26,816 nt of DNA from Paramoeba atlantica. Its lineage: Eukaryota; Protista; Discosea. The stretch covers positions 1 to 26,816 of the forward strand of contig CDRNVI010000205.1 in the NCBI GenBank assembly GCA_977017575.1. The letters run 5' to 3'. A program made the position numbers and the translations under genes. Shown piece after piece: positions 7,995 to 14,658 of this stretch. Under the pieces are notes generated by a model. That model had not been told where the DNA came from and did not search any database. It was given only the letters and a program-made list of their open reading frames with translations. Position 1 is the stretch's first letter. Every line of letters begins with the position of its first letter.

Positions 7995-8898
7995 CTTCAT
8001 TCCATGGTGAGAGCCAGGAACATGAAAAAAACAAAGTCTCTCACACGTTTATTTATGAATAGGTTTCAAGCACATATTTGTCAACATAACATCAAGTGCA
8101 AAAGCAGAGAAACACACACAAATAAAAGCACATGTAAGAGACACAAAGACACAACAAGTTTAAGGAAAGGAACAACAGATGACGTCAGCACAAATAAATT
8201 TACAGGCTGAAAGATCAAAATATGGAGAATAAACTATGCAATCAAATTGGGTCTGAAATAGGGCAAAGATATTCTTGAAGGCACAATTCAATGATTGGTC
8301 AATATTTCGGTGTGTAGTTGTCAGATTTAGATGGGACTAGCACCATTCGAAAGAGGAAGATGAGACGCTTCAGGATAGCACAACTCATGATCATAGAATT
8401 CACAAATGATGTTCTCCATTAAGTCAAACATTCTTTTTTTTTTTTTTTGAGGCAGACTTTATTCAATTAGTAGTTCTTAATCTAAGCCATTTGAATTACA
8501 TTAAATTATGTTTGTTTTTAACCTCTAACGAGAGGTGAAGTTTTAAACTTCAGCTTAGTTCAGTCGGTCTTTATGCTGAACTTTAGAACTTCTGCAAGTT
8601 CAGGCTGGAGGATGCACATCAGAAGGGAGAATAATCCAAAGCTCCTTCCAAGGGAATTTATCCTCAACTTTTTAGCAGACAGGGCTGAGATGTAACCTGT
8701 TCCGATTTTCACACTTCTTCAAGAGCTCCTCACTCCAATCAAATCACTCTACAGCACCAGAAAAATTTTCTATAATATCAAAAACTGGGATTTGAACTCG
8801 CCCCCCCGGGGTTGGACATAGTCGAATTTACGACTAAACTACAGGCGCCAACCCATAAGTCAAACATTCTTCAAACCAAGAATACTGATATTCTAACA
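7995..8898 (-). repeat. Copia 3' LTR, interrupted by a SINE (8436-8871 including one TSD copy) and missing its last ~62 bp
   Basis: 7995-8435 plus 8872-8898 align with 14191-14658. It begins TGTTAG on the minus strand at 8898, right after the polypurine tract. Confidence 0.92.
8436..8855 (-). mobile_element. tRNA-derived SINE, copy 1 (~420 bp, poly(A) tail, 16-bp TSD)
   Basis: TSD taagtcaaacattctt at 8420-8435 and 8856-8871. A-box-like TAGTTTAGTCG and B-box GAGTTCAAATCC lie ~45 nt apart. AATAAA precedes the A tail. Near-identical to 22872-23291 and 26644-26816. Confidence 0.93.
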
Positions 8899-8906
8899 CT
8901 CCCTTT
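8899..8906 (-). promoter_or_regulatory. Copia polypurine tract (AAAGGGAG)
   Basis: Purine run immediately 5' of the TG that starts the 3' LTR, 10 nt after the pol stop codon. Confidence 0.8.
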
Positions 8907-8916
8907 CATCATGAAG

Positions 8917-9435
8917 TTAATTCATAGAGCAACGGGGATGAATAAGATTATTCCAATGAGGTGTAAATACATTAGGTCCAAGGGGTTTTGTAAAAATATC
9001 AGCAAGGTTATCTTTAGTGGGCACATAATCCAACTCAATCAAGCCATCTTGCAATGCTTTTCTTGTGTAATGATCAAAAGCTTCAATTTGCTTAGTTCTT
9101 TGGTTTACATGGGGTATCTTTGCAATAGCTATCATGGGTTCAGAATCAGATTGGAGCAAGAAAGGTCTTTTGTATGGGATGCACAACTTAGAGAGAATGT
9201 TATCAATAAATTTCAATTCACAGGATACTTCAGCAAGGGCATGGTATTTAGATTCACAACTGGACCAACAAACTTGAAGAGATTTCTTGGAACACCAGGA
9301 TATGGGAGAACCATTCGCAAAAATAGCAAAACTGTAAGATGAGAATCTGTCTTCTGTAACATCTTGATGGCTTGAGTTAGCTTGGGCAGAAATCACAAGT
9401 TCTTTAGTCTCAGATTTGGATTTGGGAAACACCAA
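8917..9435 (-). pseudogene. Copia RNase H domain
   Basis: PISWCSKK, SSCESKY, LQSDSEP, RTKQIE, NLADIFTKPL motifs. Confidence 0.93.
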
Positions 9436-9471
9436 TTTATAATCAGGATATTTGGTGAAATAACTGAGAAT

Positions 9472-10273
9472 TCACAGAGCAGCTTTGTCATGATCTTCAG
9501 TGTGGGTGTTCAAGAAGCAAGAGCATTGGGAAACAGCATATGAAATATCAGGGTGAGTTTTTGTCAACCAAATTAGAGAACCAACAAGACTAGCATAGGG
9601 AAAATCAGTAGGGGGTTCATCAAGCTTAGGCATAGGCAGAACTTTACTCATGGCAGGAGTATCACTCTTTCTTATTTTGTGGCAGTCAAAACTCTCCAAT
9701 AAATTGTTGAGGAAGGCATGCTGGTTGAGAGAAATTTCTTTGTGATTTTGTTTCACACCACAACCAAGGAACCAGGAGCATTTTCCACTAGGCTTCCACT
9801 TGAATCTTTCAATCAGTTTAGAGTAAATCTCTTCACAAAGCTTTGGACAAGTACAAACATCCAAATTATCATCAACAACAGTTGGGAATAAACAGAAGTT
9901 TCCGTCAGGTTCAACACGAATGTAGAGATTGGGATCAGCAGTCAGACAATGGATTAGCACAAAATCGAGCTTTGAACTTGGATATTACACCATTTTCAGT
10001 CTTAATTCAAAATCGCCACAGGTCTTGCATAATAATGTGTTTCTTTCCATCCTTGAGGAACTTCAGGGGAGGAGGCACCAATTCCCAAGTTTTATTTTCA
10101 ATATGAGCATCATATTCTCTTTTGCAGGCTTGTTTCCATTCTTCTTTTTCATTTGAGCGAGCAGCTTGCTTGTAGGATTGAGAGGTAACTTTGTCATTAA
10201 CAACTTGGTCAGCATGGAAGGCATAGTTAAGGAAATCAAGATCTTTGTAACCATGGCCAGGTTCACCAAACAT
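9472..10273 (-). pseudogene. Copia reverse transcriptase with an internal deletion and frameshift near 9955
   Basis: WKQACKREYDAHIENKTWELV and KFKARFCA are joined directly to DPNLY...VVDDNL, FLG, YASLVGSLIWL and THPDISYAVS. The stretch that normally carries the DVxxAFL motif is absent. Confidence 0.92.
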
Positions 10274-12010: not shown

Positions 12011-12151
12011 TTTCCATTTTTTCTCACGGGTAGGACAGAGGGTTCTATGAATTCTTTTCTTGCGGAGAGGTTGAGATGAAGAAGCATCCTCAGGGGTTTC
12101 ATTTTTTGGGTGAGTAACTTCTTCAGCAATGTAAGATTGTTGATGGTTGGT

Positions 12152-13774
12152 TCAACTGGGTAAAGCCAAATAATACAAGCTATTGTTCTGTGGACCACTC
12201 AAAATCATCTGGGAATCACTCAAATTGATCTTCTTTTTCATCATACAAATTTGGTCAGAATCTAAAACAACAGAAGCATCCCAAGTTTCACACATGTGAG
12301 CCACAGAGAGAAGATTCATTTCACAATTGGGGACTACAGAGACGTCTTGAAGAGGCGGCAAATCAGAATGAATTGCCAAGTCACCTTGCATTGTAACAGG
12401 AATCAGATCGCCATTCACTTGCTTGATGCTTATGGTCATTGCGGATGGAGCATTTCTTGTTGTGAGATTTGGATCATTCACAATTGTGTTTGAACAAGCT
12501 GAATCAGCAAGAGCAGTTGCTCCATTTGATTGTTTTGCAACAAAAGCAGATTGAGTTGAAGATTGAGAAGAAGAAACGAGAGCAGAAACACAATAGGAGT
12601 AAACAAGAATATTGATTTTATTCATTTTCATCTTCCAAGTGTTGATCTTTTGAACAAAAGCATCGAAATTCGCCTTGGCTTGTTGTCCCACAGCACTTTG
12701 GTTTGCCAGGTTTGTGTTGCAACCTTTCACAATATGACTGGTGGCACCACAACAAAAACAGGCTTTAGCAGGAGGGGTGGGAAGATCTTCCCATCCAGGG
12801 TAACTTCGAAACTGGTTGCATGTTTGAGGAGAAGGAATTAGGGGACTATGGTGAGGAGGGCCATTTCCTTGTCTTCCTTGGCAAGGAGGTGCAACATTTC
12901 CTTGTTGATTAGGATTGGCAGCAGAGTTATTCTTCTTCTGAAAAGCAACATAAGCAGCAGTGTTCTCCTTGGTCTTCAAGGCTTGTTTCTTCTTGTTGGC
13001 ACTGGAGCAACTGCCTTCAATTTGTTTTAACTCCAAGAAAGCACTCTCCACCATCCACTCTTCCACTCTAAGCAGTCCTTAAAAGGTTTTCCAATGATGT
13101 TGCAGCATGGAATCTCAAATGTAACCCAATTTCTTGTTCATTGGTATCAGTTTCCCTTTCAATGCTTCAACATGAAGAAATAACTCCTTCAGTCTCAACT
13201 CAAAACTGGAGATCGTTTCATTTTCTCTGATACAACAATCCTCTAACTTACTTTTCGCTTCCTTTACATTGTGAGCAATCATGGTACTCAGATTTAAGAT
13301 CAATGTATTTCAAATAAGTTTTGATGTTCTTCTCTTCAAATTGCTAAGATACCCTTTTGCTCGACCAACACAAGCCTTATTCAGTAAGTTTGTAAGATTC
13401 ATTTGATTGTCCATATGGTCATTGAAATGTCTTTGGTTGATTTGCTGCTTGTACTCCAATTTCTCTTTGTGTCTCACCTCCAACTCTTTTCTTTCTACCA
13501 AGAATCTTTTCTTCTCAGCTTCTTCCATTTTTTCTGTAGTCTTCTCCAGCTCCTCCTTAAACTTGACTAGAACAGGTTCACCTGTAGGAACTTTGTTGAG
13601 GAATAGATGATGAACGAGATTTTTGGTGCTGAGCTGAATGAATATCTCTTTTCACCAGAGCATGAATTCAATGGTGGATTCACCTTTGAGTTCATTAATC
13701 TCAAGTGCACCCTTCCACATCTTGTTCTTTGGTTCAAACTCTGGCCAATCTACTACTCTGTAATCATCTTCCAT
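12152..13774 (-). pseudogene. Copia gag (CCHC zinc knuckle) and aspartic protease
   Basis: ATG at 13774 (MEDDY); CFCCGATSHIVKGC knuckle; LADSACSNTIV protease motif; LQDVSVVPNCEMNLLSV. It is in the same frame as integrase, with only in-frame stops. Confidence 0.9.
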
Positions 13775-14116
13775 AGTTGAGGATGTGGTGAATGTAAGAG
13801 AGTGAGAGAGAAAAAATGAGAAATGGCAACAGGAAAAGACAGGTGAAAAAAAAACTGAGAAAACCACACAAAATCATGAAAACACATAATTAAAACAAAC
13901 AGAAAGACAGGCAAAAGGAACAAGAAAGCAAGAGCAATAAAAAGAAATTGAGTGAAGTTGTTGAATAAATGAGAGAACTGGCATGAACAAGCAAAAACAA
14001 AAACAAAAAATGAAAAACAAAAAAATAGAAAATAAAACAAAAATAAAACAAAAATAAAACAAAGAAAGGTGTAAAACACTGAAGTTCAACTGATGACAAG
14101 ATCAGGCAGAGAGTCT

Positions 14117-14128
14117 AGACTCTTAATC
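14117..14128 (-). promoter_or_regulatory. Primer binding site complementary to the tRNA-Lys(CUU) anticodon arm (half-tRNA type)
   Basis: The plus strand reads AGACTCTTAATC directly next to the LTR terminus TG at 14129. This matches tRNA-Lys(CUU) positions ~29-40 (GACT-CTT-AATC). No TGG-type 3'-CCA primer site is present. Confidence 0.7.
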
Positions 14129-14658
14129 TGTTAAGTGGTGGTGGGGTTTGGTGGAAGAAGATTGCTGAGAAAAGAAAAGAAAGGTGCAAACTTCATTCCA
14201 TGGCGAGAGCTGGGAACATGAAAAAAACAAAGTCTCTCACATGTTTATTTATGAATAGGTTTTAAGCACATATTTGTTAACATGACACCAAGTGCAAAAG
14301 CAGAGAAACACACACAAATAAAAGCACATGTAAGAGACACAAAGACACAACAAGTTTAAGGAAGGGAACAACAGATGATATCAGCACAAATAAATTCACA
14401 GGCTGAAAGATCAGAATATGGAGAATAAACTATGCAATCAAATTGGGTCTGAAATAGGGCAAAGGTATTCTTAAAGGCACAATTCAATGATTGGTCAATA
14501 TCTCGGTGTGTAGTTGTCAGATTTAGATGGGACTAGCACCATTCGAAAGAGGAAGATGAGGCGCTTCAGGATAGCACAACTTGTGATCATAGAATTCACA
14601 AATGATGTTCTCCATTAAGTCAAACATTCTTTGAACCAAGAATACTGATATTCTAATA
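14129..14658 (-). repeat. Copia 5' LTR (530 bp)
   Basis: Termini TGTTA...TAA(C>T)A are inverted repeats. It aligns with the 3' LTR; the terminal TG on the minus strand is mutated to TA. Confidence 0.92.

Follow-up and report, generated by a model that had tools for sequence, protein, structure and literature searches.

Strand-symmetric, CpG-first C-to-T decay of retrotransposons in a kinetoplastid-like genome

Introduction

What process has acted on a retrotransposon whose two long terminal repeats (LTRs) differ by transitions and nothing else? The question is posed by a dead Ty1/copia element at 7993-14658 of contig CDRNVI010000205.1, within a 26,816-bp stretch that we call the window. A preliminary description, based on an alignment by eye, counted about 22 substitutions between the LTRs over about 468 bp, all of them transitions, saw them concentrated at CpG and CpA, and proposed either methylation-driven decay or a process like fungal repeat-induced point mutation (RIP). 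Transposon-restricted CpG decay is usually taken as proof of cytosine methylation. We have compared this LTR pair with other repeats and with gene loci of the same genome (assembly of 45.7 Mb in 248 contigs, of which C137 and above are treated as repeat contigs and the remainder as core). The repeat DNA that we sampled in this genome undergoes a post-integration, strand-symmetric and nearly pure C>T decay that strikes CpG first and is confined to repeats, a conclusion in which we have high confidence.

Results

The LTRs of a dead copia element differ by transitions only

The element lies on the minus strand, is degraded throughout, and is interrupted by a short interspersed element (SINE). Its parts are as follows.

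7993..8435, minus strand: LTR_A (3' LTR), first part; the direct-repeat match begins at 7995, and the TG at 7993-7994 is possibly the true terminus
8436..8855, minus strand: SINE within LTR_A, 420 bp, its poly(A) tail seen as a T-run at 8436-8449
8872..8898, minus strand: LTR_A (3' LTR), second part; matches 14632-14658 and adds 3 transitions, one of them the terminal CA/TA
8899..14190, minus strand: decayed copia interior, its frames broken into short open reading frames (ORFs); CpG observed/expected ratio (o/e) 0.18
14191..14658, minus strand: LTR_B (5' LTR); terminal CA mutated to TA

Two long flanking direct repeats (468-bp LTRs, 95.3% identical) and the Pol domain order of protease, integrase and RVT_2 identify the element as Ty1/copia. 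Along the minus strand, the interior encodes Pol_BBD (PF22936, ORF 12152-13066), the rve integrase (PF00665, 11285-11995), SH3_retrovirus (PF25597, 10424-11266) and RVT_2 (PF07727, 9472-9960); all of these matches score weakly because the element is decayed. A purine-rich tract (8899-8913) follows LTR_A on the element strand. The SINE inside LTR_A is bounded by a 16-bp target duplication (8420-8435 and 8856-8871). For the copia element itself we found no 5-bp target duplication, the flanks at 7988-7992 and 14659-14663 being CAAAG and GCATT. The 3' end of a long interspersed element (LINE) directly adjoins LTR_B, so a subsequent insertion or rearrangement probably replaced the copia flank on one side.

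With the SINE removed from LTR_A, the two LTRs aligned without gaps over 468 bp and differed at 22 positions, all by transition (22 transitions to 0 transversions). The first part of LTR_A contributed 19 of these in a 442-bp match to 14191-14632 (95.7% identity). Given a transition share of 0.566 in the unique DNA of the genome, 22 transitions out of 22 have a probability of 4e-6. The count made by eye was therefore accurate, but the 1-bp indel reported with it is absent; the only candidate is a 4-bp indel at the left end, which would arise if the LTR begins with the TG at 7993 and 14185.

We polarized the changes using per-column counts over 20 distinct LTRs of the family, with 28 other family LTR copies taken from the same genome; polarization was confined to non-coding LTR and SINE sequence. 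Of the 22 changes, 21 are C:G>T:A; the exception is an A>G. They are split roughly evenly, with about 10 independent C:G>T:A changes in each LTR. LTR_A ends in CA (8897-8898) and LTR_B in TA (14657-14658), and the TA is derived, as the preliminary description had it, since 19 of 20 family copies carry the C. By context, CpG accounts for 8 of the C:G>T:A changes, CpA/TpG for 7 (the terminal CA>TA among them) and CpC or CpT for 6, close to the earlier tally of about 10 and about 6 at CpG and CpA/TpG. Of the two concentrations claimed from that tally, only the first survives normalization. CpG is in excess (p = 1.2e-3), whereas CpA is not: the LTR is A-rich and CpA accounts for 45% of its C/G columns, so that 7 of 21 changes is an effect of composition (p = 0.9).

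The same spectrum is found across repeat families

In four more LTR pairs of the copia family, each independent, the transition-to-transversion counts were 8:0, 10:0, 6:0 and 11:0 (35:0 in total), bringing all five pairs together to 57:0. Among 35 copies of the SINE family we counted 276 transitions and 7 transversions, and among 20 copies of the copia LTR family 267 and 17. Per site and per copy, the rates in the two families are:

C>T at CpG: SINE 0.157, LTR 0.225
C>T at CpA: SINE 0.020, LTR 0.046
C>T at CpT: SINE 0.024, LTR 0.020
C>T at CpC: SINE 0.031, LTR 0.044
A:T transitions: SINE 0.006, LTR 0.010

In the repeat families, the C>T rate at CpG is about 6 times (5-8 times) that of the remaining cytosines, and every CpG column is variable (18/18 and 20/20). 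Other cytosines are affected too. Non-CpG C>T is put at about 16- to 24-fold commoner per site than A:T transitions for the repeat families, and the non-CpG transition-to-transversion ratio in repeats is about 25. Among SINE columns, 51-65% of those with a non-CpG C vary, compared with all of the CpG columns and only 4% of those with A or T. Mutations private to single SINE copies tell the same story, with 52 C:G>T:A changes, 3 A:T transitions and 4 transversions.

This non-CpG component has no consistent context preference in the SINE and LTR families. A CpA component, which the preliminary description had read as non-CG methylation or a RIP-like process, is not borne out, as the CpA rates do not exceed the CpC rates and CHG and CHH rates are equal in both families. 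Candidate preferences for CpA, TCA or CHG were all lost on normalization, and trinucleotide rates disagree between the families, TCA having the lowest rate in the SINE only. What stands is the presence of non-CpG change, without a consistently preferred context. At CpG itself the rates by preceding base were 0.13 for TCG, 0.11-0.24 for ACG and 0.24-0.30 for CCG, and show no TpCpG preference.

The decay is equal on the two strands. Along the SINE sense strand, C>T and G>A numbered 111 and 114; the strand counts were 63/63 and 48/51, the latter pair at CpG. We also considered strand-coordinated tracts, such as a processive deaminase or a round of RIP would leave along a copy, and saw none: successive mutations were of the same type in 41 of 81 cases, against 40.5 expected.

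Pairwise comparison of all repeats at ≥90% identity (about 225 kb of repeat DNA) gave a transition/transversion ratio of 15-18. The share of transitions at CpG drops from 0.47 to 0.11 with rising divergence of the pairs, the trend that early saturation of CpG would give. The bias is already present between near-identical duplicates of the repeat contigs (8 transitions to 0 transversions, and 14 to 2), which implies that the C>T process has acted very recently. Sequence flanking SINEs in duplicated repeat loci carries the same transition bias.

The substitutions are inherited and confined to repeats

An inverted duplication on contig C144 (396826-406392 and 425937-435503) contains two copies of a complete copia element; over the 6.9 kb of duplicated sequence examined, a single site differs. 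Both copies carry an identical set of 10 LTR transitions, and these must therefore be inherited substitutions; stochastic read or assembly error is ruled out as their source.

As a control for unique DNA we used three haplotype pairs, at the enolase, JBP1 and JBP2 loci (about 10.6 kb, 380 differences); each gene examined is present on two contigs, which represent two haplotypes or homeologues. Transitions within these pairs number 215 and transversions 165, a ratio of 1.3 compared with 15-40 in repeat DNA, and CpG sites there are no more variable than others (0.032 per site, against 0.039-0.053 in other contexts). Divergence between haplotypes is uneven, at 1.8-2.0% for enolase and JBP1 and 7.4% for JBP2. 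The dinucleotide composition of the two compartments differs in the same direction, with CpG o/e as follows.

Gene loci: 1.03
Window transposon block: 0.23, its parts 0.12-0.51
Other repeat loci (200 kb): 0.23-0.30

TpG/CpA o/e is 1.16-1.5 in repeats and 1.02 at gene loci. The preliminary description had named the same spectrum in unique DNA as grounds for rejection; the three gene loci instead have an ordinary spectrum. The repeats thus display a C>T excess at CpG on both strands, CpG depletion and a TpG/CpA excess, all absent from the sampled unique loci, which is the footprint associated with 5-methylcytosine (5mC).

At least 41 single units of ribosomal DNA (rDNA), 40-90 kb apart, are present only on the repeat-rich contigs C137-C244 (for example C143:106444 and C149:207128), and they are largely spared. 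In one unit within a repeat contig, CpG o/e is 0.81 in the small-subunit (SSU) gene, 1.21 in the 3' flank and 0.15 in the 5' flank, with a sharp boundary. Two SSU copies differ at 0 of 120 CpG positions, and at the 18S 3' end 3 of about 246 CpG cells differ among rDNA copies. The sparing of these dispersed units argues that silent or mobile DNA is targeted, not any repeated DNA, although selection or homogenization could mimic this pattern. Separately, four rDNA copies (C144:84585, C244:2729, C182:3732 and C182:61696) have a single CG>CA or C>T change in the conserved 18S 3' end and look as if they were beginning to decay.

The host genes resemble those of kinetoplastids

We examined gene affinities in the same assembly. 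The enolase has its nearest PDB entries in 4g7f, 1oep and 2ptw (648-634 bits, compared with 544 bits for human gamma-enolase), which we take to be the enolases of Trypanosoma cruzi and T. brucei. The genome also encodes JBP1 with the J-DNA-binding domain DB_JBP1, and JBP2 with a SNF2 domain. Judged by sequence, the genes are kinetoplastid-like, and the host appears to be a kinetoplastid-type euglenozoan.

The telomeres follow another pattern. Kinetoplastids use TTAGGG telomeres, whereas the arrays here are of the plant-type heptamer TTTAGGG/CCCTAAA (4,724 pattern matches, all on contigs C138 and above), and the whole assembly has no (TTAGGG)5 array. A plant affinity, which the (CCCTAAA)n repeat might suggest, is ruled out by the Trypanosoma-like enolase, JBP1 and JBP2. 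Enolase, JBP, uracil-DNA glycosylase (UDG) and cytidine deaminase (CDA)-fold genes were found only on core contigs, and the scored SSU rRNA matches and all telomere arrays only on repeat contigs. The two sets are complementary, and it is unlikely that the repeat contigs derive from a second organism. Copia, gypsy, LINE and SINE families are all present in the genome; to our knowledge, copia- and gypsy-type LTR retrotransposons have not been described for trypanosomatids.

Other features of the window

The window begins with a 931-bp (CCCTAAA)n telomere (1-931), followed by a 176-bp satellite; the remainder consists of stacked mobile elements. Beyond the copia element we recorded the following.

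1091..2958, no strand: subtelomeric satellite; period 176 with 10.4 copies by Tandem Repeats Finder, CpG o/e 0.31
22872..23293, plus strand: second copy of the SINE, inverted relative to the first and 98.3% identical to 8436-8855
26644..26816, minus strand: third SINE copy, 98.8% identical to 8431-8602, cut by the window end

Identity to the SINE within LTR_A is thus 98-99% for these two copies, and the genome contains at least 40 others. As the preliminary description had suggested, the same kind of flicker separates SINE copies: between 22872-23293 and 8436-8855 we counted 6 transitions, 5 at CpG, and no other substitution. In the satellite, for which it had made a similar claim, the C>T bias is present but less pure (38 transition and 21 transversion events, with C:G>T:A accounting for 28 of the 59). 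A Ty3/gypsy element at 23488-26058 retains long open frames for reverse transcriptase-RNase H (408 aa) and integrase (433 aa) and has a CpG o/e of 0.36.

Discussion

What could produce a decay of this kind? It is the 3' base that sets the CpG preference, and the two strands show it equally; these features point to maintenance-type methylation followed by deamination as the best mechanism. Our preferred explanation, which we put forward tentatively, is that the C>T decay stems from a methylation-type cytosine mark in transposon chromatin. Cytosines in silenced transposon chromatin would bear a mark that speeds deamination; 5mC, dense at CG and sparse elsewhere, would fit it best, and the resulting T:G mismatches would become fixed over many generations. 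Such pressure would be chronic and would not come as a burst, because the still-open gypsy frames have already lost most of their CpGs.

The nearest precedent is the decay of methylated transposons in vertebrates (Alu and L1), plants and Agaricomycotina (Horns et al. 2012, PMC3318451), with which our repeats share a CpG>TpG/CpA change that affects both strands and leaves CpG depleted and TpG/CpA in excess, as well as restriction to repeats and a chronic course in which open reading frames are already CpG-poor. The two differ in the enzymes and host, since we found no C5-methyltransferase, SRA or MBD here and the kinetoplastid-like host belongs to a group reported to be without 5mC in its DNA (PMC7463849). 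We conclude that the footprint is of the same kind as the CpG decay of methylated repeats, differing in host, enzyme family, motif and the size of its non-CpG component.

Several results weigh against a methylation-type mark. Six-frame searches of the assembly with the PF00145 C5-methyltransferase profile returned no candidate even at E ≤ 10, and searches with the TIGR00675 profile and with E. coli Dcm as a protein query also returned none; Cuypers et al. placed bacterial enzymes, including that of E. coli, nearest DNMT6. An exhaustive six-frame search for the PCQ...ENV pattern yielded no plausible in-frame match, the sole in-frame match without an early stop (C3:532919) lacking the usual motif IV context. 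The search for methyltransferase homologs proposed in the preliminary description therefore came back empty by four approaches, where absence means profile, protein and motif searches in six frames of one assembly. The same pipeline did detect enolase, JBP1 and JBP2, as well as UDG (two paralogues) and CDA-fold genes (three), in each case on two haplotype contigs. Nor did we find an SRA domain in the genome; MBD and a CDCA7-type zinc finger were likewise not found, but these searches had no working positive control and carry little weight. Two further features tell in the same direction: non-CpG C>T is in greater excess, and transversions, nearly absent here, are scarcer than in methylated vertebrate or plant repeats. 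The purity of the non-CpG C>T change, measured over A:T transitions or against transversions, is likewise far above that of vertebrate, plant and Agaricomycotina genomes. Finally, whole-genome bisulfite work on trypanosomatids, which have a DNMT6, reportedly did not detect 5mC in DNA (PMC7463849).

A rather unlikely but serious alternative is a cytosine deaminase that acts without any methyltransferase and is aimed at transposon chromatin or repeated DNA, a RIP-like defense lacking an enzyme of the RID/DIM-2 type. The near-pure C>T spectrum would suit it (as in the private SINE mutations), as would the involvement of every sequence context and the missing C5-methyltransferase. Candidate enzymes exist, in that the CDA-fold genes include ADAT2/3-sized ones, and T. 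brucei ADAT2/3 deaminates C in DNA according to Rubio 2007, as cited in PMC10354150. A multi-copy ORF family on core contigs (229-973 aa; C2:516902, C12:696182, C13:56666/115221/20601, C45:311843, C19:559384, C22:62180 and C75:62858) weakly matches positions 25-73 of PF00383 (20.5 bits, E 0.014) and may be spurious or a deaminase-fold lead. The CpG preference, however, is difficult to reconcile with a deaminase. Preference for a 3' base is the outcome of methyltransferase-type recognition, and we know of no deaminase with a 3'-base CpG preference. The lack of strand-coordinated runs, the eroded CpGs of the open gypsy frames, which indicate slow pressure and not bursts, and the sparing of more than 40 dispersed rDNA copies also speak against it. 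The genome yielded no APOBEC_N (PF08210), LmjF365940-deam or OTT_1508 domain, the latter two in searches without a positive control that carry little weight.

Fungal systems bear on the same alternative. Like RIP in Neurospora and other Ascomycota, the decay described here is almost exclusively C:G>T:A and is confined to repeated or mobile DNA; unlike RIP, it prefers CpG over CpA, proceeds by slow erosion without strand-coordinated tracts and spares dispersed rDNA, although selection or homogenization could explain that sparing. The RIP indices, which the preliminary description had proposed as a check on its RIP-like process, are negative: TpA/ApT is 0.54-0.62 (RIP >0.89) and (CpA+TpG)/(ApC+GpT) is 1.50-1.66 (RIP <1.03), so that CpA/TpG is in excess in repeat DNA and not depleted. 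No RID/DIM-2-type homologue was found in the PF00145, TIGR00675, Dcm and PCQ...ENV searches. The RIP-like hypermutation of Pucciniomycotina (PMC3318451) is also a CpG-centered C>T change in transposons, for which methylation and an active mutator are likewise debated. It differs in its TpCpG preference, which is missing here, whereas our repeats have a sizeable non-CpG component and a non-fungal host.

It is also conceivable, though improbable, that no dedicated system exists and that ordinary cytosine deaminates spontaneously and stays unrepaired where silent chromatin, compact and possibly rich in base J, is out of reach of uracil and mismatch glycosylases, with context-dependent repair giving the CpG bias. 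Such a process would account for a non-CpG component that is strand-symmetric and without consistent context preference, and for an effect that is local to silent DNA and ends at rDNA units. UDG genes are present, so that the genome has such repair, which could be kept out locally; JBP1 and JBP2 are present too. Yet a 6-fold excess at CpG and complete turnover of CpG columns are unexpected for unmethylated cytosine, and the trinucleotide rates disagree between the SINE and LTR families. Trypanosomatids have base J, with JBP1 and JBP2, and a DNMT6 (PMC7463849, PMC2896530). This genome shares JBP1 and JBP2 with them but yielded no DNMT6 or other PF00145 match, has TTTAGGG telomeres and carries copia, gypsy, LINE and SINE families; moreover, base J is a modification of thymine and does not predict the C>T change seen here. 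Least probable, and largely refuted, is editing of complementary DNA (cDNA) or RNA before integration by an APOBEC- or ADAR-like enzyme, or base-calling or assembly error at modified bases. All affected families that we sampled are retroelements, and C>T/G>A hypermutation of retroelements is also the product of APOBEC3 cDNA editing. Base calling from long reads, too, can be upset by base J and other modified bases. However, LTR pairs diverge only after integration, the SINE changes are balanced between strands and show no TC/CC motif, and there is no APOBEC domain. The duplicated element on C144 repeats its LTR differences exactly, and the bias extends to the satellite and to duplicated sequence flanking SINEs.

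The decay has a practical consequence, in that LTR divergence, if used to date insertions in this genome, will make them seem far older than they are. A larger claim would be that a protist of the kinetoplastid lineage erodes or silences its transposons by a CpG-preferring C>T process without a recognizable C5 DNA methyltransferase, and so has a new cytosine-marking or cytosine-deaminating enzyme, or a new means of targeting. We regard this as possible but doubtful; as far as the literature we checked goes, such a defense system has indeed not been described for this group. If methylation is present, current views on how Euglenozoa modify their DNA would need revision, and an unrecognized enzyme would be indicated. 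If methylation is absent, a CpG-first footprint must be able to arise otherwise, and an inference in wide use would lose force. A CpG-preferring process without such an enzyme, if true, would have been found in a lineage believed to depend on base J and RNA interference and to lack cytosine methylation of its DNA.

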